A DNA stretch of 64,000 nucleotides from Neoconidiobolus thromboides FSU 785 (lineage: Eukaryota; Fungi; Entomophthoromycota): assembly GCA_025603075.1 (NCBI GenBank), contig MU626272.1, forward strand, positions 62,001 through 126,000. Direction: 5' to 3'. The notes beneath the pieces were generated by a model. The model did not search any database, had not been told where the DNA came from, and was given only the letters and a program-made list of their open reading frames with translations. Below, in pieces: positions 8,155 through 58,836 of the stretch (position 1 is the first letter of the stretch; the number at the start of each line of letters is the position of its first letter). The position numbers and the translations under genes were made by a program.

Positions 8155-9107
8155 ATGAATAGTGATACTTTAGAAAAAAAAATATTAATAAATAGAGCGA
8201 ATTTAAGCGATCCCGATAATGTAACTCGGTACCAAAGATATAGGTTCAAGGCTTTCCAGATTATGGATTCCTATACTTTTCATTACAAAACCACTTTGGT
8301 TTCGATTTTGTATCTTATTGTCTTAAGCTTTGAATTTGGATATAGTGAGTTCAATAATCTTTGTCAAAACAGTAATTTATTAACTAATATAGGATATAGT
8401 TTTACCAAAACAGAATATGTTATATCTAAAGGACGAACTATTTTTCAATTGATATTTGGTATATTAGGAGCTCCTTTTATGTTATTATTTTTGATAGAGC
8501 TAATCATAAGGCTATTTGCACTCAATAATGTTAGACTATACACCGTTCGATTAGCAGCATTGGAATCTGCTTTTTTATTCGTTAATATTATTATAAGTAT
8601 GACTGATATGGTCTTGCCCTTAGATACGTTTCTAGAAATCAAAATATTAGTGGTAGCAGTAAGGTTGTTATTACAAGTTTATAAAAACAAGCAAGTAGTT
8701 GAAGTAATCGAGAAGCATGTAAATTTTAATATTTAGGTTAATAATAAGGTTAAATGTAAATAATAAAATAATAGGAAAATGAGATAACCAGAGAATATGA
8801 GGAGTACTATAAATCAGTTGTATTAAGATGCGAAAGTATAAAACTAAACAATAAAGAATTAGAAATGGAAATGGAAGAGTATTTAAAAACTATAGCTATC
8901 AGAGAAGAAGAGATTAAAAGCTTGAATACTGCGATGATTGAAACTCATAGGAAGTCATGGAGTGCCCTTGTATCACCGCTATTGGCAGTTAAGGTGAATA
9001 TACCTGTTATGTATGAAAGTTCTTCTAGTAACCAACGTAAATCTAAGGAATCAAAAGCGTCAGCAAAACTGAGAGAAAGAGGCCGCTCAATTAGCTTCTT
9101 TAAATAA
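8155..9107 (+). CDS. Divergent Hv1-like voltage-sensor-domain protein with C-terminal coiled coil, 1 intron
   Basis: Four hydrophobic helices: S1 FHYKTTLVSILYLIVLSFE, S2 LFLIELIIRLF (F..E...R), S3 ALESAFLFV, S4 LVVAVRLLLQVYK; the intron after EKH joins in frame to a coiled-coil exon. Confidence 0.65.
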
Positions 9108-9186
9108 AACAGCTTTACCATCAAATATCTATTTATTAAAATTACCTATGTCATATTTTAATCTAAAATAAAGTTTTATTCTTAAT

Positions 9187-9291
9187 ATATGGAGTGTTTT
9201 TTTGACTTCATTATTTTTTACATTTTTTAAGCGCTATTTAAGCGGAAAATTTGTTAGTAAAATTGTTAGACACAAAAATATATCCCCATAT
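9187..9291 (-). mobile_element. MITE-like family copy
   Basis: ATATGGAGTGTTTTTTTGACTTC...AAAATATATCCCCATAT. Confidence 0.85.
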
Positions 9292-9460
9292 ATTTATGTG
9301 TATTGAAATATTGGTCGATAGCTTTTTTAGAGCACAATAAAAAATAATTTGAACTTTGGGTTATTATCAGAACTCAAAATATTTAATAAACTTGTTCGTT
9401 TTTTATTACTAGCCTAATAATAAAAATAAAAGTTAGATGCTTACTATCAAAAACATAACA

Positions 9461-9554
9461 AATGGGGATATTTTTATAGTCAAGGATTTTATTAACAATT
9501 TTTCCACTCAAACAGCACTTGAAAGATAGAAAAAGTGAAGTCAAAAAAAACGCC
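9461..9554 (+). mobile_element. MITE-like family copy, right TIR eroded
   Basis: AATGGGGATATTTTT, core TTTTTCCACTCAAACAGCACTTGAAAGATAGAAAAAG, ends AAAAAAAACGCC. Confidence 0.75.
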
Positions 9555-9710
9555 AAATTGAGTTTTCATAAAATGACGTGAAATCACTTGTGATCATTTT
9601 TTTGAAAAATATCAATTTCAAAAACTAACAAGTTATTATGAATATAATGTAGCTAAAATTTTATTGGATTTAAATCAAAGAATCAAAATTGTCTTTATAT
9701 TTAATAAAAG

Positions 9711-12013
9711 ATGAGTTTGAAAACCACAATTGGATCAACAAACATAAAGATAAACTCTAATAGTAAAATAGCAGATGATAAAGATAAAGACGATTTAATA
9801 CAACCCAATTTAAACCAGGTTCGAAGCGAGAAAACCGTTGGTTCATCTACTATAAATGACAATGGTTTAACGGATACTTCAAATATTTTAGGAGAGAAAA
9901 AACTTACTTTAGAACCAGCTAGGGATGATGTTAAGGTATTGTATACTGATGTACAGAGGAGCAGTTTGCGCGCATCTGAGGCTTACCTAGGGGCAATGAA
10001 AGAAATAGAAAAAGAAATTAATGCTATCAAACCATCAATAAATTGGGAAGATGAAAATGATCATGAAACCTCTGGTAGAGAAAATGAATTATATAATATA
10101 CAAAAGAGGGAAACAAATGAAGATAGTGGAGATAGCAACGATGCCAACTCTAGGCAAGAAGTAATTTATACTATTGATCTTAATCCAGAGGAGTCATCCA
10201 GTTCTAAATATGAAGATTTTATTGAACCTGATGGACAAAAAGAGAAACAACTAGGTAATATTTTAGTTCTATTGTTTTAAAAAATAATATGAATTTGGTC
10301 AGATTGTGAAAGGAGTGGATGGGACGACATTGATGTTCCTGAAAACTCAGTTTCTAGTTTGTCTGATTTATCGGGTAAATCCTCAAAAAGCAGTATGGTT
10401 TCTGATAATTACAGTGTTTCTGAAGATGATGTATTTGCTTCTATTCTTACAGAGATTGTAACCAGTAATATGACTGGAAGTCAAGACAACCTCCTATATT
10501 ATGATGATATAGATGATAATTCCATTTTGAGTTCAAATCAAGAAGTTGTCGAAAATGATTTTAGTTTGAGTCCAACCAAGGATAACTCTATGAATAATAA
10601 AAAAGAATCTGACGATTTAAATAATGAAGTAAAAATTGAAGTAGAAGTAGCAGAAACTATAACAGATAATAATGATTCATGTATCTCTATTAGAAAGTTA
10701 GAAGAACTTCAAAATCAAAAAAATGGAGATACATTTTCCCTTAATGAACTTAATTTATCCAAAAGTGAGCACTTGGATTATGATGGTAGTAGGGAATATA
10801 AAAGAGATCAAGAAATTCCTGATTCATATTCCGTTTCCCCTAAAGCAGACGATATAGTAACCAATAGCAATAAAATAAGTAAAGCCTAAAATAAACTTAT
10901 AATTTATTTAATTGTTTAATTTTGAATAGATTTTGAAATAAAGCTTGTAAATGATACATGGAAAATACCAGACGAAAATGATAATAATGATAATAGTTTA
11001 GGTAGTGATAAAAATAAGAAATGCGAGCTTATTGATAATAAAAGAGATCACAATATAGGCAAGTCTAATTTGAATCAAAACAGCATAAAGGAAAACGTTT
11101 TTAACTACGGTAATGATTACAGTAATGGTGGGTCTTTAGATAAAGATAGCTTAGATATAAAAGCACAAAAAGGCAAAGTTAGATATATGGATTTGAGCGA
11201 AGATAATATCGAAGAATTTTATAAAAGAGAGTTACATACTTCAGCCAATGCAATAGCTCAAAACATCGTCAAAGGTGGCCTAGCTAAGGGTGGGTATATG
11301 GGCTCAAGCATAAGTGACATGGAAGACTTTTATAATAAGGAGTTAAACACAAACAATGTAAAAAATCAAAATGATTCCAATGACGATGATGATCTATGGG
11401 ATAATCAAGAAGTAGAGGTGAATTCAAACAATATTGAAGATTGGAAAATATTTTCGAAAGGTAAAGATAAAATTAAAATCAAAAATGAAAAAAATTAATG
11501 TATATTAAAACTAAACATACTTTTAGTCAAAATAAATCAATATCAAAAAGAGGACAGGCATAATATAAAAAATGAGTTTTTGATAATAAATGAAAAAACT
11601 GAAATTGAAATAAAAGAGGAAAATTTTAATGAAACGCAATATGATATTTCAGATGAAGTTTGGAAACCGAATTCAAGATGGATAATACCTAATTTCAATA
11701 TCACAGTTGTCGAAGATAAATCAGTAAACAACCAATCTTTGTTAAATGATATTGAAATTGGTTGGGAAGATGGTGCAATGAAGCTATCTGATTTTCCAGT
11801 TAGATCATGGTCTAGCGATAGTAATAATGAGGATGGTTATAACGAAAGTGAGGAGTTAAAAAGCAGAAAAAAGGATGCACTTAATAAATTCAAAGAGTAC
11901 AAAGCTAAAAATAAAGCGAAAAAAGATCCAACTCAGGTAATACTAATTTAATATTTCAAATTATTAATAATAATGTATAGAAATTCTTTGAGAGTGAGTT
12001 CAACGATATTTAA
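9711..12013 (+). CDS. Uncharacterised acidic, Ser/Asn/Asp-rich, probably disordered protein, multi-exon
   Basis: Four successive long + ORFs separated by ~50-nt AT-rich GT-AG gaps; last exon KFFESEFNDI*; no recognisable domain. Confidence 0.7.
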
Positions 12014-12295
12014 AGTACCAACCTTTTAAAATAATTGAACTAGTTTGACTCTAAAATGTGGCCTCTATGTGAATCCAGAAATTAAATTTAAACAATCATT
12101 TTTATTACTATTGATGATAACAATAGTCCCAGTCGTTGGAAGGTCTAGTAAAACTTGCATATTGAACTCATAGTAATAAATAAAAACCCATGTTGTTATA
12201 TTTTATAAAGAGATGATTTTAGTTAAACTTCATAATAAGAAAGATCTAACAACCAAAGCAGCTTGGATGATTTTTAACATAGCCATAGCTTTTTG

Positions 12296-12398
12296 ATATG
12301 GCGATGTATTTTTTTGCTTAATAATTTTACTAATAATTTTTCTACTCAAATAGCACTTAAAAAATGGAAAAAGTGAGGTCAAAAAAACACCCCTATAT
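12296..12398 (+). mobile_element. MITE-like family copy
   Basis: ATATGGCGATGTATTTTTTT...AAAAAAACACCCCTATAT. Confidence 0.85.
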
Positions 12399-13185
12399 AC
12401 TGAATATTCAAATGCTATAAATGATTTTTATTTGTACTACTGAGGCTGATTATAATTGCCATGAGTTAAAGCTGTCTTTGCTAACTCCAATTTATTTAAA
12501 TTGCTTGTAGCGCTTAATTATATTAGTTTATATTGTAGATGACATATTATTAATAGAGAAAACATGCTATGAAATAAAAATAAAAATGAAAATGAAAAAG
12601 GGGCCACTTTTAAAACATAATGTTACTTTATGGTGAATATTGTATTATTAATTTTACTTTTTTATGATCTTTAATAAAATATTTAAAATCTTTTACATAA
12701 ACAAATCACAAAATAATGTATAGTTATAGCATGACACTAACTTATAAATCAAAATCGAGTAAAATGCAATAAAATAGCATAAAAATTCAAAATGTCAATA
12801 GTAGTTTCACATACCAATATTATATAATGTTAATAAATATAACTTCTAAATCGAGAAAATAGTTGAAATCCACTCAGATTATTTAAATTTTACTAAAATT
12901 AGACTTTAACAGTAAAAAAAATACGATCAAAAAATAAAATATGTGGAAGTTTAGTAACTGAAATTTTATGTAATAAAGAAAACTAAAAGTAAGGAGAATT
13001 AAATTTAAAAAATAGGTTAGAATAAACTTAAATGATGAATAAAAAAGATGGCAATAATAATAAAGTTTAGGAAATTATATCGATCGTCTTGTAACTTATT
13101 TATTAGTTATGATAAATTTATAATCTATGATAATTTCATATGCTTGTTCTTATCTTTTTTCTTAACTAATCAAAGTTTCATTCAT

Positions 13186-15037
13186 ATGTTTGCATTAAAA
13201 TACATCACTTCTTTAGCTCTACTTTATTTAATGAACTTGCCACACTATGCCACTAAAGAAGTTGTATATAATTTAACTATAACGCTAGGTGTAGCGAATC
13301 CAAACTGTTTTGGTAGTCCACAGGTATTAGTTAATGGTATATCGCCTGGTCCTGTAATAAGAGCAAAGGAGAATGATTTATTAATTATTAATATCATAAA
13401 TAATTTACCAAAAGATGAGTTCACAATGCATTATCATGGCTTACATCAAAAAGGTACTCCATTTTATGATGGTGTGCCATTTATGACTCAACTACCAATT
13501 CCTCCAAAACAGTCTTATCAACATCGTATCAATTTAGTAGGGCAACATGGTTCATATTTATATCATTCGCATACAAAGACACATGCATTGACAGCATTAG
13601 GGGCCCTAATAATTGACCCAAAAGATGAAGAGCCATTCAAATATGATGAAGAATTAATACTGGTGTTAAGCGATAATTTATCTGCATCCCAAGGTCCTTC
13701 ACCACCAAGTGAGGGAAAGGCTAAACTAAATAAATTAAAAAATAGTACAGTGATCAACAGTAATAGTAGTATAAAAAGAAATAGTTCGAACCATACCATA
13801 ATAAGTAGAAAAAACATACATATGAATCACAATGATGACAACCATACATTATTTATTAATGGATTCCCAAGTACCAATCTATATCGGTTGAATAAAGATA
13901 TGGATAGAGAATGTAAACCGACAGTGTTTTCAGTTGATCCAAATAAAGTATATAGGCTGAGGTTAATTAGTGCAACGACAAAAGAATATATCTCGTTTGC
14001 GATAGCAGGACATGTTTTAGAAGTAGTTGAAGTAGAAGGATTTTATGTTAAGCCAGTTAAATTAGACAAAATACCTATACATTCGGGGCAAAGATATTCA
14101 ATTTTAATTAAAACAAATCATTCTAGAAAAACCGAATTTAACATCCATGCTCACTCTTTGAAATCAAATATTAATGATAATCCTTTAATTGCATTTGCTA
14201 AATTAAGCTACCTAAGTGATAATATTAATACCAGTAACTCCAACAATACAACTATAAGATTAGGGGAAATACAGCCTTATTTAAGAGACTTTGGTATTTT
14301 ATTTTCTGATACAATACATATGTTCTAATATTTTTTTAGATAAAAAGATAATAACTTTAGACAGTGATTATAATACACCATTTGATCTTGATTGGCCCAT
14401 GGATTTCCGTATGTACGGTAATAATTTAAAAGCAGCTTCAAATCTATTTGTTCCATTAAATCCAGTACCATTAAAAGAAGCAACCAAGAAATTTTATTTT
14501 AGGGTTACTCATGAGGAAAAAGAAGAAGAAGAGGCTCCAAGATGGTATGTTAACGGAACCACGCTAAAAATGCCCAACTTCAATTTACTTAAAGAAGCTT
14601 ATAAAAATAATACCCACACTTATGATAATACAAATTACCAACTAGTCCATTTAGAAAAAGATGAGGTGATTGAAGTTACAATTCAAAATACAGTGGATTT
14701 AGCAGGTTTGTGTGATAATCACCCATGGCATTTACATGGTCATTCATTTTGGGATTTAGGTTCTGGACCAGGTACCTATAACCCGAATGATGATAAATCG
14801 TTGAACAAAATACCAATTTTAAGAGATACCTTTACTTTTTCATTAAACTTACCACAGGGTAACTTGACGCCGAAAGAAGACTGTGGTTGGCATACGATTC
14901 GATTTGTTACTGACAATCCAGGACTATGGATCTTCCATTGTCATATATTAAAACATATGGACTATGGAATGATTATATACTTTATGGAAGGTTATAAGGA
15001 TTTGCCACCATATCCGTCTGATATTACCCTTATCTAA
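13186..15037 (+). CDS. Secreted multicopper oxidase (laccase/ascorbate-oxidase-like), 1 intron
   Basis: Cu motifs HYHG, YHSH, HPWHLHGH, HCHILKHMDYGM (axial Met); 46-nt intron 14294-14339 restores the frame; signal peptide from ATG 13186. Confidence 0.93.
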
Positions 15038-15333
15038 AAATAAATTATATACTATTTTAACTTTATTATAGTATTTTCAATTTTTTATGATATACCAATA
15101 ATTACTAAAATAAAAAATAAAAACATTACATTGATATAAATTTTATATACCATAAGTATGCTTTAATTACAATTATTAATATTTAAAATAAAGAACATAA
15201 ATAATATAGGATAATAATCAGAATAATTAATGGTTTATTACAGAGAATTTTTTATCAACAAAAAATCGCTCTTTATTAGCCTTTTACTCTGATACGTATT
15301 TTGAGAATACACTAAACTGATACAAATAGAATG

Positions 15334-15443
15334 ATATAAGGATGTTTTTTTGGCTTCATTACTTTTTCTATCTTTTAAGTACTATTTACTTGAGTGGAAA
15401 AATTGCTAGTAAAATTCTCAGACAAAAAAATACATCACCATAT
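15334..15443 (-). mobile_element. MITE-like family copy just upstream of cmk
   Basis: ATATAAGGATGTTTTTTTGGCTTC...AAAAATACATCACCATAT. Confidence 0.8.
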
Positions 15444-15485
15444 ACAAAAAGAACAATTTCATTTTTATTGCTTTTTCTTTAAAAT

Positions 15486-16403
15486 ATGTTAATTCAAAAA
15501 ATAGCACTCAAATATAATTTAGCTCCGATAAAATTGTATACTACAATGAGAAAGAGATTTCAATTGGCAATTGATGGTCCAGCAGCATCTGGGAAAAGTG
15601 AGTTATGGCTTACACTAAAATTAACTAGCACTAAATCAAGCTTAAAAAAGGTACTACCGCAAAACTGGTTGCAAAAGAGTTAGGTTTTGATTATTTAGAT
15701 ACTGGTATATCTATACCTTTATTTTTTACTACCTACTAATATAATTTTATTTTAGGAGCGTTATATAGAGCAGTAATAACTTTAAATAACAAAGCAGATC
15801 TTAAACTAATAATTAAAGGTAACATTAAAAGCGATCCAAAACCAAATATTTGAAGATGAAGACAAAATGCGGCAAAACAATAGAATCATTAATTTATTGA
15901 ATGATTTAAATATCAATATGAAAATGCAAGAAGGTATGAATAGAATATACTTAAACGGGAAAGAGATAACGGAAGAAATAAGAGACATAAAAGTGACAGA
16001 AAAAGTGTCACAAATTGCCAGCATTTCTGAAGTTAGAAAAAAACTATATAACTATCAAATTTCAAGAGCGAATGATGAAAATGAATTAAACGGTATTGTA
16101 ATGGAAGGAAGAGATATTGGTAGTGTAGTTTTACCAAATGCTGATGTTAAAATTTTCTTATTAGCAGATGTGAATTCAAGAGCTAGAAGAAGATATGATG
16201 AACTGAAAAAGAACAATAAATTAAATACTACCTTTGAAGCTATCTTTAAAAGTATAGAAGAAAGAGATCATGCTGACTACACTAGAAAATTATCACCCTT
16301 ATTAAAGGCAAGAGATGCCATATCAATCGATACTTCTAATTTAAGTATCAGGGAACAAGTGGATAAGATTGTTACAATAGTTAGCGAAAAATTGAATAAA
16401 TAA
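15486..16403 (+). CDS. cmk: Bacterial-type (d)CMP kinase (cytidylate kinase) with 3 spliceosomal introns
   Basis: [81 protein letters not shown]; 17-nt exon at 15756-15772. Confidence 0.93.
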
Positions 16404-16449
16404 ACGTAATAGAATATGCAATATTAGTTATTATAAATTTTTGAAATTT

Positions 16450-17222
16450 TTATTCTAAGTTATTACTGTTACTATTATACAAACTTATTTGCTCCTCTTT
16501 ACTAAGATTGTATCTTCCCCTCCAAGTTTCCCAATCAACTATTCCATTACTTATATTATGTATTAACTCATCAAAATTCGTTTCATTAATAAAACCGTAC
16601 CAATCGCCCTTAGGATAGTGAATTACATTTCCGGCATATCTAAAAGCTAATAAGTATAGGCAGACAGAAATTGGAATCTTACTTACTTGTGACCACCAAT
16701 ATGAGAAACTTTAAAAGTACAAAATTCTGATTTATTCAACTGGACCCCTTTTTTGTAAACTTTAGTTCCAATAGTACCGCATCGACAATCTACTTCATTA
16801 TGGGTACAAACTAATAATTGATTTTTTGAACTTAACGTTTGATATTCCAAATCTTTAAAAACTCTTTGAAACTCTTTAATAGTATTAATGTTGTTAAAAA
16901 CTAATTTATCCACGAACTCCTTTAGTTTTAAGTCCTTTAATAAAACTTTAACTCCTAATGGAAACACTATTATACTATCTTCTTCTTCACTTTGGCTATA
17001 GATACTACTTATTTTTATCCTTTCTTTTTGTTGACTATTATATCCTTGCATCATAACACTAAATAGATCCATATGAAAATTACTGGTTTTTTGAATTGCT
17101 TTTGGCCAACTTTCATGTCTTGTTGATATTCCTAAATGATAACCATACTTTTTAACCGTTCCATATAGTACTTCTTTTTTACTGGAATAAGGTCGAATTG
17201 TTTGTAGAATTATTCTTTTCAT
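16450..17222 (-). CDS. Sucrase/ferredoxin-like (Aim32/Apd1 family) thioredoxin-like 2Fe-2S protein, 1 intron
   Basis: LLVCTHNEVDCRCG and SHIGGHK-YAGNVI motifs, DWYG, WRGR; basic N-terminus resembles a mitochondrial presequence. Confidence 0.88.
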
Positions 17223-17239
17223 AATTGACTAAAAAATAA

Positions 17240-17345
17240 ATAAGGGGATGTATTTTTTTGTTTAAGAATTTTACTAATAGTCTTTCCGCTCAAATAACGC
17301 TCAAAAAATGGAAAATGTGATGAAATTAAAAAAACATCCTCAAAA
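17240..17345 (+). mobile_element. MITE-like family copy (left member of an inverted pair)
   Basis: GGGGATGTATTTTTTTG...AAAAAAACATCCTC. Confidence 0.85.
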
Positions 17346-17445
17346 TTTCAAGAATCACTTGTTTTAATTTGTTGTTAACTTTTTAAAACGCTACCAATCG
17401 AGTTCTTGTATAAAACCTATAGTTGACTATAGTAAAAATCAAAAT

Positions 17446-17552
17446 ATGTGGGGGATGTTTTTTTAATTTCATCACATTTTCCATTTTTTAAGCGTTATTT
17501 GAGCGGAAAGACTATTAGTAAAATTCTTAAATAAAAAAACACATCTCCATGT
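17446..17552 (-). mobile_element. MITE-like family copy (right member of an inverted pair)
   Basis: ATGT flanks on both sides; core nearly identical to the reverse complement of 17240-17345. Confidence 0.85.
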
Positions 17553-17783
17553 TTATTTTTCATTAGCTTTGGGATAAAAATTTATTTTCAATATTAATAT
17601 TAATTAAACAACCGTAAAATAAGACATTTACTTAGATTTTAAAAATCAGTTTTCAAATTACCAAAATACTATTTAAAACCAATAGAAGAATATCTTAAAA
17701 CCCCTCGACTACCCATTCAAGAAAGCCATTACACTCGATGACAAACTTATTTGAATCTTTTGTTCTTCTTAGCGGCTCTAATA

Positions 17784-17878
17784 ATATCATTCCATATTGT
17801 GTTTTTTAATCACTACAACAGTTACAAAAATCAAAAAAAGCAGAATTCTTGATTAAAAAACACAATATGAAATGATAT
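17784..17878. repeat. Hairpin with 28-bp inverted arms (1 mismatch) and a 39-nt loop
   Basis: ATATCATTCCATATTGTGTTTTTTAATC / GATTAAAAAACACAATATGAAATGATAT. Confidence 0.8.
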
Positions 17879-18316
17879 CAAACTAGCCAAAAAAAGCAGC
17901 CTCCTTGATTTATAACCAAATTCGCAATCTTTTATTAAGTTGCAATTTTACTTCGATTTATTGATCCAGCAATTTTGCCTTTATCCTTCATTTCAACAAA
18001 GCTTTGAAATCTCTAAGCCCAAAATGTTACAATAAAGGAACAAAAAACAAAAAAAGCAGGGGCTGAAATTTTTGTTGGTATCAAAGAATAATTCCTAAAT
18101 TAAGTAAATTCTAGCCCAAATTTGTGTCAAATAAATGAATTGTAGGTTAAGTTTATTCTTGATTTTAGTTTTAATATTGATTAAGTTGAGGGGGAAGGTG
18201 GATAACAATAAAGAATATATATAAAGGGGATTTAGAATGTGAACTTAAAATATTTGTTTTTGGGTATATTTTAGCTAATTTAACAGTGAATTTTTTATAA
18301 TAATTTAATATTCAAA

Positions 18317-19045
18317 ATGAAAAAGACGGATATCAATAGTTTAATAATAAATATAATGGATAGCTCTATTTTTACTATCAGTATTATATGTAGCTTAGTA
18401 TTTAATTTTTGTTTGAGTTCAATCGATTATTTATTAGGTATGTTACTTATATACCATTATTATATATTTATTTACTCTTTTTATAGCTGTTTTAATAATT
18501 GATAAACAACTCCCTTTTACACAACAGTATTTTGAAGCGAACAAAATGGTAGGTATTATGTGTATAGTATTATGTGGCATTAATACTGTAGAAACAACAC
18601 TTCGGTTAATTGTTAGCAGAAATGAAGGGTTAAAATTTAAGATAATAGTGATCATGGACTTATTAATAACTTGCTTTTTGTTTTTTGCCCAACTTTCTTT
18701 GAGTTGCTTAGATAGATTTGAGTATATACCTTTTATCTCTTCTTTTTTAATTTTTAGACTGATATTTGTCTATTTAAGAGTTAGTATTAATAATAATCAA
18801 GAGGTAAACTTAACTGTATTATTGTTAGTTTGTATTTAAGCTTAAATTTTCATTGTTAGTTTCAAGAAATAGAAGATGATACGGCAAGTCTTAATTATTG
18901 TATGGAACAGCTAAAGAATAAAGAAGAAGAAATAGAAGGGCTAAACAAATTGATAGCGGATTTTCAGTCAAAATTAAACTCAAAAAGCACTATCTATCAA
19001 ACTACTGCTACCATATTAACGGCTCATTCTAGTGAAACTTATTAA
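18317..19045 (+). CDS. Small divergent Hv1-like voltage-sensor-domain protein with C-terminal coiled coil, 2 introns
   Basis: Spliced ORF of about 207 aa: S1 IFTISIICSLVFNFCL, S2 NTVETTLRL, S3 IMDLLITCF, S4 LIFRLIFVYLRV, then MEQLKNKEEEIEGLNKLIADFQSKL coiled coil. Confidence 0.6.
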
Positions 19046-19200
19046 GTTTCTTGTAATAAAATTAATTTATTTTTCGATATAATTATTTGTAAATTATGAA
19101 ATGGATTTTCTAAATTTAACAACTGAGAAATCTCTTAATCAATTTTAAAAATCTAAACTCCCAAAAATTCATACAAAAAACATTTCTAATTTTTTTTAAA

Positions 19201-19934
19201 ATGGATAGAGATTACAATATCGAGATATCAGATAATGAGCCAGAGGAATACGAAGTAGAAACCATACTAAGCCATTCATATCATGGTGTAATAATATGAA
19301 TAGCTAATTTCTTTAAAAGGGTATACTAATGATTTAACTAATAGCACAAATTCTTTTATACCATCAAATGGAAGAACTATGATCATGAAGATAACACAAT
19401 TGAACCTGGAGAAAACTTGTAACTATAATAAATCACTTGAAAAAACTCAAGGCTAACTTTTATAAAAAAATGACAGAGAAAACGCAGATGAAGCTTTGAT
19501 TGCTTACTGGACAAAAATAGAGGAAAATAAAGGCAATAAAAATCTAACCAAAGAAGAAGAAAATATGATAGAAAAGTATGTTCCGCCAGGTTTAATACGA
19601 CAAGAGTTACCAATAACTTTAAATTACCCACCAAACAGTATGGGAGATTGGAATGACAACATTAAAAGTATAGCTAACATTTATCCAATTGAAGATAAAG
19701 TTTATGTTTTTATTGAATGGTAAAACTAAATTTAAGACAAAACCATAACTTTTTATCTAACTCTTGTTTCATTAGGAAAACCAAACATTTTACTTTACAC
19801 GATATAGAAGATGTCAAGCATAAGATACCTCAAAAAGTTAGTTTTATTTGGTTTATTAATCATTTAATTTAATTTTTTTATAGCTCATTAAATATTTCGA
19901 AAAGCACATAGTTATTATGTCAGATAGAAACTAA
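19201..19934 (+). CDS. HP1/Swi6-like chromodomain plus chromoshadow protein (paralog b), 4 introns
   Basis: EEYEVETIL..YTIKWKNY..DNTIEPGENL; WNDNIKSI..FIEW-KTK..VKHKIPQK-LIKYFEKH; intron positions equivalent to those of 2552-3310. Confidence 0.8.
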
Positions 19935-20061
19935 TCTTATTTATTAATGTCAAATAAACTTTAATCCTAAAACTAATATTAAATTATCATAATTTAATCA
20001 TACTCTTTTTAAATTTATTCTATTTTTAGCAGCATCTTTTATCTCCCTTTCAACTTGTTAT

Positions 20062-20662
20062 CTAATAACCTAACTTCTTAAGTACACCAAGTCTAGCCTT
20101 ACGTGGTTGATCACGTAAGTAATACAACTTAGCTCTACGGAATCCTTGAGAACTACGAAGTACCTTGATGCTTTTAACCATTGGCGAAAACACCCTAAAT
20201 TTTTGCTCAACGCCAACTTTGAGTACCATATTTCTTAATGTAACGCTAGTGGTTGGCCCAGAACGATGGATAGCAATGCAGATACCTGCAAAACTTGTTG
20301 TAACCTGCTTCTTTGCATTACGATAGAACTCAACTACCATCATATCCCCAGCTACTGCCCTTTCTGGTCCATCTTTCTTGAATAGAGTTGCACGATCGTC
20401 AGTGGTTCCATAGCGTGTCACTATGTCTTCGCGTACAATCTTCATAACATCTTTTACATTGCGTTGGCCGATTGGTATTTGTTCAGGTACAATTACATTT
20501 TGTGGTGGAGTGTAAGTGGATAAAACTGGACAAAATTAATATTAATGGATTGGATTAAAATGTCTTAATAGTATTACCTGATGGAGTAGAAGATAACACT
20601 CTCTTTGAAATGTTAGTTATTGATGGCTTTAAACTGGAGACTAAATTAGTTAATTTAAACAT
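20062..20662 (-). CDS. MRPL19: Mitochondrial ribosomal protein bL19 (Img1/MRPL19), 1 intron
   Basis: FAGICIAI..SG..TSVTLRN....GVEQKFRVFSP..FRRAKLYYLRD. Confidence 0.92.
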
Positions 20663-20907
20663 TTTATTTTTTTATTGAAATATTCAAAACTTGAAAATTA
20701 AACTTTGAGTAAAATTTGAAAATTGAATTAGAATTGGGCATTTAATTATGGTAACTCAAATGGACAGATTTAAGTTTACTTTTAATATCTATATTACAGT
20801 CTTAAAAGCTCAAAAAATAACTTACTACAGCCAATGAAGTTTGGTACTTTTTAAACTATAAAATTCAGAACAAAGTCAAAAAAAATGACAAAACAAAAAA
20901 GTCAAAA

Positions 20908-22694: not shown

Positions 22695-22906
22695 TTAAAA
22701 ATAGGAAAAGATAAAAAATTGTAGTTTATTTCAATAGTCAATATAATAAAGTAAGACTAAATAAGAAAGTAACAGATAAAAAAAATTCATTTAATATAAA
22801 AGAGTTCCAAAATATTTAAAAATAATTTTGAAAAAATTAAAAAGCCTGAGTAAATTTGTCTTTTTACTCCTTCTAAAATAATATTCGTATGTTATTCCCA
22901 CCTAAC

Positions 22907-32124: not shown

Positions 32125-32159
32125 TATTTATAATAAAAAAAGAACAAATAATTTAAAAA

Positions 32160-40473: not shown

Positions 40474-40509
40474 CTCCAATCAAAAATAACAAAAATATAA
40501 GCTCAAATA

Positions 40510-45791: not shown

Positions 45792-46318
45792 ATTTCCACA
45801 AATAGTTTACGCATCCTTATAAAAATTAAGTACACATTAATAAAATAAATTATTACCAATTTCCAAAAGTTTGTCGTCATCTTTAGATAGGAAAAGTAAC
45901 AATTAATTTAGAAAAAAACCCTAAATTTATGTGTAAAATTATGAAAAAATCATTGATTTATTAAAGCTCGAAAGTTAGAACATAATTTGAAAAGCTTAAA
46001 ATTTAATGTAGTATAAAATTTAAAGTGGCTTAAATTTCAAATAAATGTCAAACTCTGATATAGAATAGTTAACAGATCCTTTAAAATCACTTAGAAGGAC
46101 TTTATCAGATGCATCTTAGATCCTTAAAGCTAAAATTTCAGTTTGTAATAATCCTTCTTGGCTTAAAAAATAAAAGCCCAAAAATAAATCAGTTTTTTCT
46201 AAATCAATTACTACTTTTCCTATCTAAAGATGACGACAAACTTTTGGAAATTGGTAATAATTTATTTTATTAATGTGTACTTAATTTTTATAAGGATGCG
46301 TAAACTATTTGTGGAAAT
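45792..46318. repeat. Perfect 107-bp inverted repeat (45792-45898 / 46212-46318) with a 313-bp spacer
   Basis: Checked base by base; the arms extend about 19 bp further inward with 3 mismatches. Confidence 0.93.
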
Positions 46319-46754
46319 AGCATAATTATAGTTATGTAATATTTGGTATATTACAGAATTTATAATTTATTTAAGTGAAAAGCTAAACAGGGATAAGGCT
46401 CATATAATTCTATATTTTTGATTCCAAATCTTGAAATTATCTAAAAGAGGCAAATTCATGTTGTATTCCTATATAATTATCTCATAAAGTTTAATAAATA
46501 GATAAATCAAATAACTTTTTATTTCTAAATGTGATTGAAATTAATCACTCAAAAATTAGCGAATTGTTAAAGCTTACAGCGCATTATGCGTTTTATGAGT
46601 TCAAGGTAAATATCACAAAATTTCAATTTTTATAGTTATGATATTGGTTTTTAGTCATTTAAAATTACTACAATAAAACATAAGCAAAAGTAATAGTATA
46701 AAAACAATCACCTAACAAGTAAATAAGAAATAATTGAAAACCAATTTATAAATT

Positions 46755-49700: not shown

Positions 49701-52354
49701 TATACTGAAGTCGAAAAATTAAAATATGGTATCTGGAGAAAAGTACTGAATACAGTATCCATAATAGTATTCACAAATGCATCATTTACTGAAAATTATT
49801 CTATTTTACAACATCTGAATGTTCGGGTTGGCATAATACTGGAAACTGAGAAATTTAGTGATTCTAAATTATTAACACTAACGAATTCTTTAAGCTTAGA
49901 ACATTTGATTTTATTTGCAAACCCTTCACAATTAAATCCTTTTTCTTATTTTGGTAATTTGAAGTACAGGAATTATTGGGAGTTTAGCCTTGTTAAGAGA
50001 TTATTTTCTACCGAAAGTATAAGGACTACACTCTCAAATTGTTATACAAAAAATAGTGCATTATTACCCATTGTATCAAATTTACATCCAAAGTCAAAGT
50101 TAACAATTGACCACCATCCTTTAACATCCCTTAAAGGAGTAGCTAAGCAACTTTCTTTTGTCAATGTATCAAGCATGAAGCATGCTATATGGTTCAATAC
50201 CGTTGAAGCAAAATTTATTGCTAGATTTGTGATATTTTTATATCAGCAAGGTTATACACAGGATGATATAGCAATATTTTCTTTGAGTTACAGCCAGGGG
50301 AAAATTATCATTGAAGCGCTTTTAAAAATGTTTAAAGTGTCCGAAAAACACCAACTTCTAGATAGAGAGAAAATAGGCTTACTGCCAACAGTTTATTCAC
50401 CTGGATATGAAGGTGGAGGTACATTCAAAATAGTGGTTGTTTCATTAATTTTTGGTAGAGAGCTCCGAAAGAACGATAACATTTCCTGTGTGAAGTTTGT
50501 GAAAAGCGCTTTGTTTTCAAGCCTTGAAAGCGCGACTATCTTTGGCGATGAATCGTGTTTTTCAAATGTCAAAGAATGGGTAACTTTTATGGAATTACTC
50601 AAAGCATCAGGTATTTTAGCCATTAAGTTTGTTTTGTTTATTGACCCTTTTTAGGAAATGTTACCGAATATTTAGAGTTAAGATGTCAAAGGCATACACA
50701 TACTGTAAATAAAGTTGATCACGATTTTGCATTTGATAAGGTGTGTGAATATGGTGGCTGTTTGGTAGTAATTAATATATTTTGAATTAGCATATATTTA
50801 TTTGATATTTAGGAAAAATGTGATCAACGATTAGCTTGTGGTCATATGTGTAGCCTTTTATGTCATCCATGGTTTCATGATAATTTGATGTGTCAGAAGC
50901 CATGTAATCGACGAAAAATATATGATTGCGGGCATATGTGTATAAATAAGTGTTTTGAATGTAAAGAAAAGGGGTGTCCTCCATGCGTGGAAAAAGTAAA
51001 TGCTAGACTTCCTTGTAACCATACATTTAAAGTTCAGTGTTCAAAAAAGTTAGTTATTGATGATATTGAATGTCAAGAGTTAGTAATTATTAAATTGCCT
51101 GGTTGTGGTCATGACTATACTATTGAATGTTTTAAATCAAATAACGATGATATATTATCTAGAATAAAATGTAGGGAAAAGGTTGAAAAAGAATTAGAGT
51201 GTGGTCATATAATCAGTGGAACATGTTATAAAGATATTTCATGTAATCAGGTATGTTTAAAAAAATTGGAATGTGGCCACTTTTGTCAAAGTAAGTGCGG
51301 GACAACGCATTCACATGATCGAAAATATTGTAAACATGATTGTCCCAAGGTACTTTTATGTGGTCATATGTGTCAAATGGGTTGTAGTTTACCTAATAAG
51401 CATACACAGTTTTGTAAAGAAAAGTGTAAGATTTGTTGCCCACATAAAGTTTATTGTCCAAAGTTATGTTATGAAGCTTGTATTGAATGTATTGAACCAT
51501 GTATATTTGGATGTAGGCATCAAATATGCCAAAAGTCATGCTCTGAACTGTGTGATCGTTTGCCATGTCAAAGAAGATGTGATAAAGTATTTGACTGCAA
51601 GTAAGTTTTATCAGGCTATTATAAAGTTTTATTAAATTATTTAGTCATCAATGTGTTGGCTTTTGTGGGGAACCATGTCCGCCATGCAATAAATGTATTT
51701 CTATGGAATGCCCAATTTCACTCCATCAGTTATCTGATATTAATTTAGATAATAATGAGTTACTTTATATGTTACCAGATTGTAATTGTGGTAAGTTAGT
51801 ATTTTATATATACCAATCCTATATTAATTCTATTTTATAGTTTATTTAGCTTCTTATTTAGATAATTATTTTAAATTTAATCCATCTAATAATGATGATA
51901 CAATAATTAAAATATGGTCTTGTCCAAAGTGTCAAAAGAACATAATAAGTGCTCCGAGATATGAAAGCTATATTAAAAAAGGATTAAATGATTTTTATAA
52001 AACAAAAACAACTATGTTACAAGGATTAAATTCGCTCACAAACAAGGAAAAGGATCAAATTATATTAGCTATGGCATCCACTGTTGATTTAGAAGTTTAT
52101 GATATTGTGGGTGGTAGATGGTTTAAATGTCCTAATAGTCATCCTTATTATATAGGTAATAATAGATTAATAACATGATTGTATATGTATTTATTAAGTA
52201 ATTCTAAGGTGAGTGTGGTGGTGCTACTGAAATATCCAATTGTCCAGAGTGTAATGAAGTAATTGGCGGTACAAAACATAAAATCGTATCAAGTAATGCT
52301 TTTTTTGGGGAGTTTGATCACTCTGAGAAACCTGCTTGGCCTGGACAAGAATAA
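46755..52354 (+). CDS. ZNFX1-like protein: degenerate SF1 (Upf1-like) helicase, NFX1-type zinc-finger array, C-terminal RZ finger; multi-exon
   Basis: Order of helicase-derived segments matches ZNFX1/Hrr1; repeated LxCGHxC motifs; WFKCPNSHPYYI-GECGGA...CPEC..IGG..H; 5' exons approximate. Confidence 0.88.
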
Positions 52355-52457
52355 TATAATGCAATTATTTTTTAAAATTATTTTATATAAAATAAAATAG
52401 GTTAAATTGCAATAAATAATATAGTTTAATATTAAAAAAATGAATAACTCTTTTAAT

Positions 52458-53231
52458 TTAAATATCTTCAAATTCTATTGCCTCATCTTCCCATAAACCA
52501 ATAGGCTCTGTATTTAATATACCATAACAATTAGCTAAGTTAACAAAGGATAACTTTGGCATCTGTTTTAATAATTGAACACTATTGTCAGTTATTAATT
52601 CACAATTTTCTAAACTTATCTCTCTTAATGTTGATTTACATTTTATTAAAATTTGTTTTAATTCTTCATCTTCTATATTAGTATCCGTTAAATCTAAATA
52701 GATTAAATTTTTACATGAAGAAATAGATTGAAATCCAGATTTATTTGATTTAATACCTTCGACACCCAATCTCACTAACTGATTGTTATAAGCTTTAGTA
52801 ATTAAAGATAAGCTAAATGAATTCAGTTTGCACAATGGTAAATTTAAATCTTGAACATTAGGACAATATTTAATTAGTTGATATAAATGTTTATCAGTAA
52901 TTAAATTCCAACGTAAAGGTACAATAGCTAAATCGACTTTTTTAACCAATCTACCAACATTATTGTATAATTTTTTAACGTTTTTACTATGAGTATTTTG
53001 TTGTTTTTCAAAGGTGGAAGAAGTGGAAGATAATTTTAGACTATTTAAAAAAGAGGAGAATTGGTTACATGTAGTGAAGATGGGGGAAGTGTAGATACAA
53101 GGTAAGGAAACTTGATACCATAATTTATTGAGTTGAGATATGGTGTAAAGATCAGGAAGTGTTAAATAGCTGCAGATTAAATCTACTAATTCAATAGGTA
53201 ATGATTGGGATGAGCTTGATGAAAATGCCAT
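52458..53231 (-). CDS. F-box plus LRR (RNI/Amn1-like) protein, intronless
   Basis: LPIELVDLICSYL..LNKLWYQVSLPCIY; CPNVQDLNL, CKNLIYLDLT, LREISLENC, LSFVNLANC. Confidence 0.88.
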   Translation of the reverse strand: MAFSSSSSQSLPIELVDLICSYLTLPDLYTISQLNKLWYQVSLPCIYTSPIFTTCNQFSSFLNSLKLSSTSSTFEKQQNTHSKNVKKLYNNVGRLVKKVDLAIVPLRWNLITDKHLYQLIKYCPNVQDLNLPLCKLNSFSLSLITKAYNNQLVRLGVEGIKSNKSGFQSISSCKNLIYLDLTDTNIEDEELKQILIKCKSTLREISLENCELITDNSVQLLKQMPKLSFVNLANCYGILNTEPIGLWEDEAIEFEDI

Positions 53232-53381
53232 TAAATTTTAGTAAAATTTAGATTCTAAGTTGAAGTTCACTTGAGTTTTGAATTCAAATTTTGCACTTTT
53301 TTTTGGAAAAGTTTGAAAAAATAAATTGAATTTGATTACTTTTATTCTTTTTATTAATATAGAATATAGAAAATAAATTTA

Positions 53382-55043
53382 ATGGCTCGTAATAGAAATA
53401 ATCAACAAAATAAAGACAATCAATTAAATGTTAATAAACCTTCTGAAGGATCTAAAACTCCTATATCAACTAATGAAAATGATGTTAAGCTACTTGAATA
53501 TATCATGAAAGAAGTAGCTACGTTTGAAAACAATACAAACGAATCTCAATTAACTTCTCTTTTACAAATTCTTCATTCTCGTCAATTGATCAACAGACTT
53601 TATTCTAATGATAATAATAGTGAATTACAAAAAAGATGGCTTATGTATATTACCAGCTTGTTAACTAAAACGGATCCAACTCAACAAGTTGCTATTTTTA
53701 TCAGTTGTAAGTTAATAGCAATTAGTATTGAACAATCAGATATTATTTATTTGAATGGGATTGTTAAATGGACAGGTGAATTAAATAGATGTTTACAAGT
53801 AAGTTTTGCATTACAATGATAGTGCATATTCTATTATTTCTTATTTGAAAATATTAATTTTAATAATTTAGAAAGTTTCATTATCAGATGTTGTTTGTAT
53901 TGAAGTTATTAATACGTTATCCAAGTTACTTTTAAACACTTATAATCAATTGGAACTTCAAAGAGAAGTTACTAATAGTAATTTACCTATTTTTATTTCT
54001 GGTTTAATGTATAAATTAAAAGGGGAAAGTAGTGAAAAGGTTAAAGTAAGTTACTTAAATAGTGTTGAATTTAATATATAAATTAAAACAAATTTATATT
54101 ATTGTTAATTAGTTAACTTGTTTAAAATCGATTCATGATTTGATTTTATGTTTTCCAAAGCAATATCGTTCACAAGTAGCTAATTTAAGAAGTTTATTAT
54201 TAACTATCTGGACTGATGATAACTTAAATATTCAACCAAATACTTTATTGGCTACTTGGTGGTTTAAATGCTTATCTGTTTTGTGTTTAAGTAATAATAC
54301 ATCTCAATTAATTACGGAAAATTTTAATAAAGAATTGGAATGTTTGATTGATACAGCTAATTTTTTATTAAATCAAGTATTGATCACAGTACAAGGTAAT
54401 ATTAATTTATTTAATATAATAAAGAATAAAGGATAAAAATCAATTATTAATATTTTATTATAGAACCTTATAAACAAATCAATAATCAATATGAAATTGA
54501 AATTAAGGAGGATGAAGTTAACAATCTTTTAAGACATCAAAAGGAATTTGAATTATTTCTATTAGCTTGTCAAGGAATTATTGGGTTTTTAAAGTAAGCT
54601 ATCGAACAAATATTACTAGTCTTGATAAACTTGTATTAAATTCATTATTTTTAGTTTTAAAACAAAAGAAAATAGCTTATTGTTGTCTATTCCTATTAAA
54701 AAATGTTTAGATTTATGTACTCGAATTTATTCTTTTGGGCCTAATTCAAGGGTAAATTGGAGTTATTTTGTAATTAACAATTTGTGAATTTTTAATTGAT
54801 TTTTTTATTAGATGTTAAATAATCAATCAATCAAATGTTATTTAAAATTGATGTCGAATTTGCCTATATTACATTCAGTAGCTAATGATTTATTAGTTAA
54901 AATGTGTCAAAGGCAGGTTTTTTTTAAATACTTTAATTATATTTTATTAATAACATTATTAGATTTAGTATTGGTATGGTAGAACACTGTAAATTAATTA
55001 ATAACATAATCAATAAGCTATTTTACAATTCTATTGGGTATAG

Positions 55044-55106
<63 letters not shown>

Positions 55107-56432
55107 TTTTTTAAATAGTCAATTAAGAGACAATGCTTACTCTTTAGTATGTCAATTAATTTATTATCTTGGAGATAATTTATTATATTTTATAATGGAA
55201 GGTTTAATATTAAATATAATTAGTGATTTAAAATTTAAACAAAAACAAAAGATGAAAAGTCAAGTGGTAAGTTTACAACTACTAATAACCATTTTGTTAT
55301 ATATTTATCTCTTTTTAACATTTTTTGCTTTATAATAGACTTCAAGCAATAGAAGAAATAAAACACAAACAATATCCAATTCAGATCAGTTATTAAATAA
55401 TAATAATCTATTAAAACCAGAAGATAATTATGAATGGGCATTAAAAGGTAATTTATTCCCCCCCTCTCTTCTCTTATTACATATTAATTACTCCTTAAAA
55501 TAGCTTTGTCTATGATATTAAAACATAACAGCTATATTATATCTTATGAATTAAAACAACAATTTGATAAAATTATATATTTCAATGGAATTCAATTTAT
55601 AAATAATCAATTAAAATTAACCAATCAACAACAATATCAATTAATTCAATGTTTGTATTATTCTAGCTTAATACCTAATCCATCTCAAGCAAGTTTACTA
55701 GAGTTAACAATATTATTATTAAATCAATTCAACTTATTAAAGGAAGGAGAAGTAAGTTTTTATTTTTTAAAAATTATAGAATGATTGTGAATTTATTAAT
55801 TGAATTTTATTTTTATTTTTATTTTTTAGTTAAAACAATTTTCCACCATGGCATTACAATCTATTAGTTTGTTAATGAATCCTCAATTACCAGCTAGTAC
55901 AAAAAATGTTACAAACTTTAATACTAATAATGAAAATCAATTAATGAATTTTAGTATTAATATTATGGATTCTAATAATACTTTATTAAATGGGAATAAC
56001 AATAATAATGATAAGGAAAATCAAGATGAAAAAAAGGAAGAAAATAGAATTGATAATTCAAATGAACATTCTTCAATTGATATTGAAATTGAAAAAGAAG
56101 AAATTGTTGATGAGGAGGTGGATGTTGAAGTGGATAATATATCACCAATAGTGGACTTAATTTCTATGGAAAAAAGAGAAGCAGAAGAAGAATTAGAAAA
56201 TTTAGAAAACAAAAGAAGTAACTTTAAGACAACAGAGAAAGTACAACCGAATAAAGAAATAAGTGAAGGAGATATTATAGTAGAAAATAAGTTGATAATT
56301 GATACAGTTATATTGAAAAATGAAAATAAGGAGGAGAAAGTCGAAGAAGTTATAATTAAAGCTCATAAGGAGATGAATTTAAATGATGATAAAGATTCAG
56401 ATGATGAATCCATTCCAGACATCGTATTTTAA
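53382..56432 (+). CDS. RIX1: Rix1/PELP1-like pre-60S biogenesis factor, many introns
   Basis: Armadillo-like N-terminus with LELQREVTNSNLPIFISGL; acidic tail ending DSDDESIPDIVF. Confidence 0.7.
55045..55103. repeat. (TAT)n microsatellite, about 19 units, intronic
   Basis: Direct reading. Confidence 0.9.
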
Positions 56433-56743
56433 GATAAAATTATAAGTCTAATTTAAGTTAAAGTTAATAGATTTATTATTAAAGTTTATAGAGATCAAAT
56501 ATATGAATTTTTTTTTTCTTTTTATATATAAATATTATTTTTTATTAATACAGGGGTTAAAGATAAAGAAATAAACAGAAATAAATTGATAAAGATTGAT
56601 AAATAAATAAAACAGATAGTGAAGATTATAGAAAAATAAATAAACAAAAAAACAAAAAAACAAAAAAAAGAAATGATTTAAACTATACATATATATTATA
56701 AACTATGACATATTACACAGAAAATCAAGGTCTAAACTTTATA

Positions 56744-57565
56744 TTAATTGTTATCATTCTCTTCCATTTCCAATTTAGATTGCTTTCTAAGTGCAGGTGC
56801 TAATGGTAATTTAAATTCATTCGGATCAAATTCAGATGAATAAGAAGAAGATATATGACCACCTTCTCTTTCATCAATAATTTTATTCTTATTTTTATTT
56901 TTTAATTTAATTAAATTTCTCCTTCCCTTACCTTTTCTTTTGATTTTAGGTACTTTTAAATTATTATTGATAGAAGGTACAATTTCCTTTTGTTCAGATA
57001 TCACTGATATTACCTCAGGGGGATTATAACTAATAGGTTGAATAAGCGGGGATAGTGACGAAGTGTGATTATTAATATCATTAATATCAGTATTATTATT
57101 ATTATTATCACTGTTATTACTATTATCTTCTTTTAATTGATTTTTAATTTGTTGATTTAATTCTTCCATTTCAACTTTAATAATTGGTAATTCGGTATTG
57201 ATATGGTGATAAATAGATTTATTATTAGTTAATGGTGTCTCTGTTTTATTACTATTAAAACTAGTATTAAAATTATTATTAAAACTATTATTAAAACTAT
57301 TATTATCCCTTATTAATTCATTAATCCTTTTAGGAGAAGGTTTAGATTTTATACTAGTGTTATTGTTATTATTGTTATTTTTACTATTCAATATAAAGTC
57401 CACTTGTTCTGCTTCTTTATTTAACCCATTTTTCATTAAATTATATATTTTTTCTCTTGATGGGGTTAATTTAATACTTTTTAATGAATTATTATTTGAT
57501 TTATCTTTTTCTCCAATATCGCTACTATTATTACTTTTCTCTATTTCTTGTCGTTGTTGATTTAA

Positions 57566-57603
<38 letters not shown>

Positions 57604-58836
57604 CTCGATTAATAAAATAATTTTGTTTAATATTAACAAGTTCTTGAGAAAGTGATATACTACCTCTAGATCTTCTTAATCTTGAATTATTTAAATTATT
57701 ACTTTTACTATCTTGTAAACTTAATCTACCAATTTTAGGTGATATTAGACAATCATCAAATAATGTTGGATTAATATAAATTTGTTGAATATCATTTTCA
57801 TCATTTTCATTGTCATCTTCATTAGCTTTTTCTTGCAAACTATCAATTGAATAATAACTTTCTTTAGAATTTAATTTAATTGTTTTACTACTTGAGTTAC
57901 TTGATGAATCTTCTTCTTTATTTGATGGATAATTGTCTTGCATTAATTTATTCTTTTGATTTTGATTTGTATTGCTATCAATTGTATTAACCATTCTCAT
58001 TGTATTAAATTTCCTTGTTAGTCTATGTATCTTTTTATTTAATACTTGACTATCTCGAATTGCTTCTTGAGTTCTTTCTTCTTTCTCTACTAATTGATTT
58101 GATAATTCATGTATCATTAATTGGTAATTATTGATTCTATTCAATGCGGTATTTTTTTCTCCTTCAATTCGTTGAATTATTAGTTGATTTTTGACTTCTA
58201 CTGAATGAGCAATTGAATGAATACCTCTAATTACTTTCCAAAATCGGAAGATAATTAATGTTGGAGCAGCAATTTGGCCAATTGAATGATGGTATAAATG
58301 TAAATAAACTTCAAATGGTAAGGAAAATAAGATGACTAAAGCATCTAACAAATTTAAGATATTTTTTAAAAATGCAGTACCTAAATAAAATAAAATAAAA
58401 ACATATTAGCCTACTTGTCATTAAATTCAAATAAATAATTGTATTTACCTAATAGTACTATTTTTAGTATTATTTCCAATACAAATAATGCTAAGATAAA
58501 ACAACTACCAATAAATAAAGCTTGATGTGCTATTTTTAACCCTTTACCGCTTTTTAAATAACCTTCTAAATGATGTAATTCTGTAATTTAAAAAAATTAG
58601 TCCTGATTCATTATATTATGTGTAGACTAATCTCTCTTACCTAAAACTTGTTGAACCATTAAAATCACCAAATCAAATAAAATCAAGACAATAATAATAT
58701 AATGAAATAAATCACATTCAATAGCATCTAACAATTTCATTCGAAATGTTTTTTGTTGAACAATTTCCAAGGCTACCGCTTCACTACTTCTAAATGTACC
58801 TTTACTATCTGAGAACTTAAGTCCTTTTTCCTCCAT
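56744..58836 (-). CDS. HVCN1: Voltage-gated proton channel Hv1-like with coiled coil and long Asn-rich tail, 2 introns
   Basis: S1 FHYIIIVLILFDL (selectivity Asp), S2 FVLEIILKI, S3 LLDALVI, S4 LIIFRFWKVIRGI (RxWxxxR). Confidence 0.85.

Follow-up and report, generated by a model that had tools for sequence, protein, structure and literature searches.

A probable lineage-specific family of Hv-type voltage-sensor genes in the fungus Neoconidiobolus thromboides

Voltage-gated proton channels of the Hv1 (HVCN1) type, among them the fungal SlHv1 and AoHv1 (PMC7910559), consist of a pore-less voltage-sensor domain (VSD) of four transmembrane helices, S1 to S4, the last of which runs on into a coiled coil; Hv1 dimerizes through this coil, and its subunits gate cooperatively (PMC4148356). 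The Asp in S1 (D112 in human Hv1, hHv1) and the Trp in S4 are near-invariant (PMC10377628, PMC4621752). Exchange of D112 in hHv1 for Asn, Phe, Ala or Ser yields anion-permeable channels, and its exchange for Val, Ile or Gln abolishes the current (PMC4969798). Fungal Hv channels are present in all major fungal divisions and have been characterized electrophysiologically (PMC7910559). Their S4 follows the motif R.WR..K (PMC7910559, PMC10377628), and a 2023 review found one Hv per fungal species and, as natural variation at Asp112, only Glu in some insects (PMC10377628). Here we describe three genes, A, B and C, in a window of 64,000 nucleotides (nt) of AT-rich DNA (~27% GC) from the Zoopagomycota fungus Neoconidiobolus thromboides FSU 785 (contig C15, positions 62001-126000). 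All three contain introns and encode four-helix membrane proteins in which helix 4 continues into a coiled coil and no pore domain follows, the arrangement seen in Hv1. Probably all three belong to an Hv (HVCN1-type) family that has expanded in the N. thromboides lineage. In full-text literature searches, neither Hv genes in Conidiobolus nor paralogous Hv genes in fungi turned up.

Two further systems invite comparison. TMEM266 (also HVRP1 or C15orf27), a conserved, vertebrate-specific protein, combines a VSD with a coiled coil contiguous with S4. It bears Val at the D112 site, is non-conducting even with the Asp restored, and forms coiled-coil dimers whose effector is unknown (PMC4148356, PMC6392501). 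In molluscs, the normally single-copy Hv has likewise expanded in a lineage-specific manner into functionally diverged paralogs (Aplysia AcHv1-3; PMC10911540). These are reported to have remained proton channels that bear the signature residues, which A and B have lost.

Gene C, the divergent genes A and B, and their relatives

The three genes lie where a preliminary description, made from the window alone, had placed them, and every motif quoted there is present in the sequence. Their introns, in models rebuilt from sequence, are uniformly of the GT..AG type and 48-68 nt long. Each model reaches a stop codon after the coiled coil and hence contains no S5-S6 pore helices, a clear difference from the Kv and Cav channels of the Ion_trans family (PF00520). 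Searches were run exon by exon or with database proteins identical to the models (P0001, P0003 and P0004).

Gene C looks like an Hv-type channel gene, judged from its motifs and from exon-level evidence. It is encoded on the minus strand in three exons (58836-58641, 58580-58449 and 58380-56744) specifying 654 amino acids (aa), of which residues 1 to ~233 make up the predicted VSD and coiled coil. S1 carries Asp55 (58672..58674, minus strand), the counterpart of the D112 selectivity filter, 11 codons before a phase-1 intron. S2 contains F98, E101 and K105 in the spacing F..E...K, and S3 contains D122 with a Glu at +11. S4 reads RFWKVIR (58226..58246, minus strand) and aligns to RLWRVAR of hHv1. 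Gene C is thus like Hv1 in its S1 Asp, its S2 motif, its S3 Asp with an acid at +11 and its S4 Arg-x-Trp, and differs from the described fungal channels in having R.WK..R, with Lys at R2 and Arg at R3, in place of R.WR..K. A predicted coiled coil follows directly after S4 (58010..58207, minus strand); its sequence is heptad-like and aligns with the coils of A and of two further genes, D and E, introduced below. When the exon encoding S3 and S4 was compared with the PDB, human Hv1 (5oqk) was the sole match (E=0.047), in an alignment that pairs D174, D185, R205, W207, R208 (Lys in C) and R211 of hHv1 with gene C. The full Hv signature ascribed to this gene in the preliminary description is therefore present. 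With its S1 Asp, its S2 Phe, Glu and Lys, its S3 Asp and the S4 R.WK..R, gene C would keep the parts needed for voltage-gated proton conduction, and it most likely encodes a working dimeric proton channel with an unusually long, presumably disordered tail.

This tail follows the coiled coil as a single open frame of ~420 aa (window 56744-58006), Asn/Ser-rich and of low complexity, and gene C is with 654 aa far longer than the described fungal Hvs (183-309 aa). A word-based protein search with exon 3 gave no match, the gene's own protein included, and the protein collection contained no matching gene C protein among entries of 299-952 aa. Since no protein of its own was found there, gene C seems to be unannotated or modelled differently. 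A query for contigs that encode a gene next to gene C returned no record.

Gene A lies on the plus strand (8155-8344, 8393-8718 and 8775-9107) and specifies 282 aa, an Hv-like, VSD-only protein here called "Y-type". Its first two exons correspond to the NCBI partial protein P0001, and the last finds support in P0002 and P0004, models of full-length paralogs. At the filter position S1 appears to carry Tyr53 (8311..8313), kept in 4/4 paralogs. The charge-transfer-centre motif of S2 is intact as F96..E99...R103 (8488..8511), the acidic residue of S3 is E121, and S4 reads RLLLQVYKNK (8662..8691), in which Arg154 occupies R1 as the only Arg and Lys163 at +9 is conserved. A coiled coil, predicted from the paralog P0002 to be continuous with S4, extends across the intron 8719-8774 (8692..8939). 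It is followed by a cytoplasmic motif, THRKSW..V.P....V.IPVM (8943..9011), the most constrained segment of the family. Right after S1 lies an in-frame phase-1 intron of 48 nt (8345-8392), which is seen in P0001. Read through, this intron yields "LLTNIGYSF", which mimics the selectivity filter of K+ channels. A K2P pore match to gene A (E=0.03) was dismissed as an artefact, being composed in part of residues translated from this intron.

A six-frame search of the genome revealed three paralogs of gene A, on contig C323, at 188 kb of contig C15 (P0002) and on contig C28 (P0004). The four genes, A1 to A4, agree in exon structure, and their alignment is gap-free across the membrane region. In all four, S1 retains the Tyr, S2 the motif F..E...R/K and S3 the acid, and S4 has one Arg only, with a Gln at +4 and a Lys at +9. 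The ratio of nonsynonymous to synonymous substitution rates (dN/dS) within the family is 0.2-0.3 over the whole protein, at a dS of ~1, and falls to 0.11-0.14 in the C-terminal motif: the A genes are old and under purifying selection. An AlphaFold2 (AF2) model of P0002 (mean predicted local distance difference test score, pLDDT, 74.6) has four transmembrane helices. Its S4 helix, residues 141-243, runs into the coiled coil, with pLDDT >90 over residues 190-230. In this model the continuity of S4 and coil reproduces the Hv1 architecture.

Gene B, also on the plus strand, specifies 207 aa (18317-18437, 18487-18803 and 18860-19045); the protein is VSD-only and Hv-like but divergent, and its model is identical to NCBI K502DRAFT_362842 (P0003). 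Asn30 (18404..18406) probably occupies the S1 filter position: hhalign places it on Asp55 of gene C, and both lie at an equal distance from a phase-1 intron. S2 contains E76 and R80 and has Asn73 where the Phe would be; S3 contains D98; S4 reads RLIFVYLR (18756..18779), with Arg131 at R1 and a second Arg at +7, and is without the Trp, R2 and R3. Behind it a C-terminal helix, predicted to be continuous with S4 and to form a coiled coil (18789..18985), is indicated by the AF2 model and by weak coiled-coil Pfam matches. In that single-sequence model the protein has four transmembrane helices, and the last helix spans residues 117-203, with pLDDT 68-86 over residues 150-190. The pore-less four-helix architecture with a coiled coil that the preliminary description had proposed for A and B agrees with the stop codons behind both coils and with the AF2 models of P0002 and B.

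Spliced RNA contigs of gene B were recovered from four public runs belonging to two studies, with both introns as GT..AG joints, which identifies these runs as RNA. One of them, of 836 nt, is a stand-alone transcript (18137-18434, 18484-18801 and 18858-19077). Gene B is transcribed and spliced as modelled and, by this transcript, is not joined to pore-domain exons, a splicing pattern that had been named as the outcome that would overturn its reading as a VSD-only gene. Transcripts of a second organism or strain differ from gene B at window positions 18342, 18359, 18377 and 18759. In exon 1 these differences amount to L9S, D15N and I21V; the exon encoding S2 to S4 has one synonymous change only, in S4. 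The motif IMDS..F that A and B share ahead of S1, as first noted in the preliminary description, is touched by one of them, D15N, which turns its Asp into Asn.

Measured against Hv1, A and B keep the S2 Glu and base, the S3 acid, R1 and the coiled coil, and at +7 in outer S1, where hHv1 has E119, both are acidic. Missing from both are the filter Asp, the S4 Trp, R2 and R3; B is also without the S2 Phe. A and B might be seen as decaying, functionless duplicates of the Hv gene, whether pseudogenes or annotation noise. Gene B is indeed a singleton, with no relatives found in genome or word-based protein searches (the only match being the same-species protein), and three nonsynonymous differences separate the strains in its exon 1. 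Yet the reading frames and splice sites of A and B are intact, gene B is correctly spliced in all four runs and varies only synonymously in its S2-S4 exon, and the four A paralogs have stayed at a dN/dS of 0.2-0.3 despite a dS of ~1. Decay is accordingly a very improbable account of these genes.

The family extends beyond the window. A PF00520 scan of the six-frame genome detected two more Hv-type genes on other contigs. Gene D encodes 199 aa (L015:816-1523, plus strand; G000:C27 ~107.3-108.0 kb) and combines an S1 Asp, S2 F..E...K, two S3 Asp and S4 RLYKMFR with the intron layout of A and B. It has Tyr where the literature calls the Trp of Hv1 invariant. Gene E encodes a VSD and coiled coil of 221 aa (G000:C90 ~30.4-31.1 kb; exons on the minus strand at L014 plus-strand coordinates 1377-1527, 1014-1330 and 771-968) and passes PF00520 with E=3e-9. 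Its S4 reads RFLVVLRLLR, and its S1 lacks the Asp, with Gln at this place if S1 is anchored on the intron and Phe in the MAFFT alignment. Both are clearly related to C, at z = 8-14 even with block shuffles. Where the preliminary description saw two paralogs of one channel, the genome thus holds a family of at least eight genes: four A-type genes, B, C, D and E. Against the single Hv per fungal species of reviews (PMC10377628), this gives at least three Hv-type genes together with five divergent ones.

Kinship of A and B with the Hv-type genes

That A and B are Hv-family paralogs is argued by profile alignments above their nulls, a shared intron, invariant columns in S2, S3 and S4, and language-model neighbours. 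The profile comparisons were made with hhalign in local mode, as global mode gave uninformative alignments, and the nulls consisted of 120 shuffles within 12-residue blocks, which keep the hydropathy profile. The A family aligned with a profile of C, D and E over 203 collinear columns from before S1 to the coiled coil (P=5.8e-5), and B aligned with it over 160 collinear columns comprising most of the VSD and coil (P=0.0026). Both scores beat 120/120 block-shuffled nulls, with z of ~5 for the A family and 4.4 for B. Both were also higher than the scores against Kv, Cav and TRP proteins of the same genome. These controls were a four-domain Cav/NALCN-like channel (C39:122.5-126.1 kb), a Kv-like channel with a TTGYGD filter (C111:59.7-60.3 kb) and a TRP-like protein (C324:3.4-4.1 kb). 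The A-family S2 motif F..E...R does resemble that of the genome's Kv channel, over 29 columns (P=0.0045).

The intron evidence is independent of the alignment scores. By exon lengths, the codon split by a phase-1 intron in A, A2, A4, B, C and D comes 11 codons behind the residue at the S1 filter site, and the DNA of A3 shows the same splice point. Gene B (18438-18486, plus strand) and gene C (58640-58581, minus strand) thereby carry an intron at the aligned position of 8345-8392 in gene A. Aligned without intron information, Tyr53 of A and Asn30 of B both fall on Asp55 of C in hhalign, and the introns fall in one column. In gene E, the intron agrees with this pattern only when S1 is aligned by means of the intron itself; MAFFT shifts this helix by a few residues. 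The S1 assignments, Tyr in A and Asn in B, thus come from profile alignment and shared intron, without strong sequence identity. Together with the charge-poor S4 helices, they bear out the earlier claim that both proteins are devoid of the filter Asp and of most S4 charges. In an unsupervised alignment of the eight proteins the S2 Glu, the S3 acid and the S4 Arg are invariant (8/8), and the S2 base is kept in 7/8.

A protein language model points the same way. The nearest ESM-Atlas feature clusters of B and A are annotated Ion_trans or "voltage-gated hydrogen channel 1", with 178-203 shared features. Gene B scores 0.90-0.92, and the Ion_trans/Hv family accounts for 68/100 of its nearest clusters; gene A scores 0.90, with 78/100. 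Such neighbours are leads, not proof. A TMEM266 cluster stands among those of gene B at 0.84; it is the only link to TMEM266, as sequence comparison gave no match that would make A or B orthologous to it.

A number of results weigh against this kinship, and they favour an alternative in which A and B are four-pass, coiled-coil membrane proteins of separate origin, and in which a generic bundle with a few buried charges came to resemble a VSD by convergence. Pfam, searched with every exon and with P0001 and P0002 at E up to 10, gave no relevant family. The PF00520 scan of the six-frame genome found no match on A, B, C or any part of contig C15, while D and E passed. A HMMER profile of the A family retrieved no VSD from the PDB, only coiled-coil noise, and phmmer found no PDB match for gene B. 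Among 1.84 billion proteins, the HMMER profile of the A-family VSD matched only P0001, P0002 and P0004, all from N. thromboides; word-based protein searches with A and B likewise returned same-species proteins only. The P0002 model ranked designed or soluble four-helix bundles (Z ~14) above the Ci-VSP VSD (Z 10.1). Foldseek with this model gave no significant PDB match, channels with a VSD or voltage-sensor-like domain being frequent among its weak rows. VIA-align and the Atlas shape search returned generic helical bundles or MCP-like shapes, again with VSDs in weak rows only. The predicted fold of the A family is a generic four-helix bundle, and the searches do not separate a VSD from other up-down bundles. 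The AF2 model of gene B is of low confidence (mean pLDDT 54). Pairwise similarity is weak between A and C and between B and C, and for B and C it is not significant with block shuffles. The C/D/E profile itself is shallow, consisting of three sequences from one genome, and the function of A, B and C is entirely inferred.

Convergence must nonetheless account for an intron that agrees in position and phase between independently aligned sequences, for hhalign scores that exceed all 120 local-shuffle nulls and the non-Hv controls, for invariant charge-transfer-centre columns, and for Hv/Ion_trans neighbours of both genes. It is in our view improbable. Descent from the Hv family is instead quite likely for A and, with slightly less assurance, probable for B. 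The relationship to the Hv channel asserted in the preliminary description has consequently gained an internal link through the C/D/E profile, and it found no match in HMMER, Pfam and PDB searches. Its companion claim, that A and B stand outside curated families, agrees with the empty Pfam result and with their database name, "hypothetical protein".

Possible roles of the divergent proteins

In the scheme proposed here, A and B would descend from the same ancestor as C, with the filter Asp replaced by Tyr in A and by Asn in B. They would have lost the Trp, R2 and R3 from S4, and retained the Glu and the basic residue of S2, the acidic residue of S3, the Arg at R1 and the coiled coil. Such membrane proteins would no longer be proton-selective, steeply voltage-gated channels. 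Since S4 has one or two charges, their response to voltage is expected to be weak at most. The mechanism favoured here is a dimeric VSD scaffold, largely static or weakly responsive to voltage, which would be a functional analogue of TMEM266 of independent origin. Like TMEM266, A and B have a neutral residue at the D112 position and a coiled coil contiguous with S4. The vertebrate protein differs in keeping several basic residues in S4 and in moving with voltage, and in being conserved among vertebrates, whereas A and B are found, at HMMER sensitivity, in one fungal species. In the A family, output would pass through the cytoplasmic motif behind the coil, whose conservation hints at a partner or effector specific to this family. 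The further step, that the single-copy channel gene was expanded into a set of eight VSD-only proteins and that the re-tuned A1-A4 and B constitute a new functional class, either regulatory subunits assembling with the Hv channel or voltage or lipid sensors acting through the HRKSW...IPVM motif, is a tentative proposal with a rather low probability.

The main functional rival is residual conduction, in which A and B would still pass ions with changed selectivity or gating, through anion-permeable or leak ("omega-type") pathways. The D112N and D112F mutants of hHv1 are functional and permeable to Cl- (PMC4969798), and both proteins retain the Glu of S2, the acid of S3 and R1. Gene B offers a polar Asn both at the S1 site and at the S2 Phe position of the hydrophobic gasket, and gasket mutants of hHv1 are reported to give gating-pore currents (PMC6754559). 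With R2, R3 and Trp lost, however, conclusions from hHv1 mutants cannot be carried over directly; the Tyr of gene A is bulky, and HVRP1 stays silent even when its Asp is restored (PMC4148356). Such conduction is therefore unlikely.

A different use of the coiled coil would be heterodimerization, with A and/or B pairing with the gene C channel and tuning or silencing it, as the preliminary description had envisaged. An S4-contiguous coiled coil is common to the three proteins, Hv1 itself dimerizes through its coil and gates cooperatively (PMC4148356), and A, B and C share one contig. The coiled-coil sequences are nevertheless unlike each other, co-expressed human TMEM266 left hHv1 currents unchanged (PMC6392501), and the cytoplasmic motif of the A family points to another partner. 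Pairing with gene C is, on this balance, decidedly unlikely.

Whichever role applies, the family reads as a natural mutagenesis series: gene C, a canonical-looking Hv, stands beside the Hv-type variants D and E and five relatives that are expressed or under selection, and across the series the filter Asp gives way to Tyr, Asn or Gln and S4 is stripped of charge. The series bears on what a VSD does once proton channel function has ceased, the open question around TMEM266, and it supplies small, cloneable proteins for testing models of the selectivity filter and of the gating charges. An eight-member expansion in a single species, with three different filter replacements, would be new beside the one Hv per fungal species of reviews. 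Should the A family indeed signal through its motif, it would be a fungal counterpart of TMEM266 that evolved independently and whose partner motif is tractable. To date, the divergent A/B family has been seen in one species only.

Transcribed features near gene B

An Rfam scan of the window gave zero matches. Two transcribed features flank gene B. Downstream, at window 19200-20700, lies a transcribed gene with at least four short GT..AG introns, whose joints fall at 19287/19345, 19418/19477, 19718/19775 and 19836/19884. On the other side, at window 17104-17556, RNA-contig depth rises 10- to 100-fold over the surroundings in all four runs. Many of the contigs break into unrelated sequence there, and the segment overlaps the start of an open reading frame on the minus strand (16683-17222). 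The segment resembles a transcribed element that is multi-copy or derived from a repeat.

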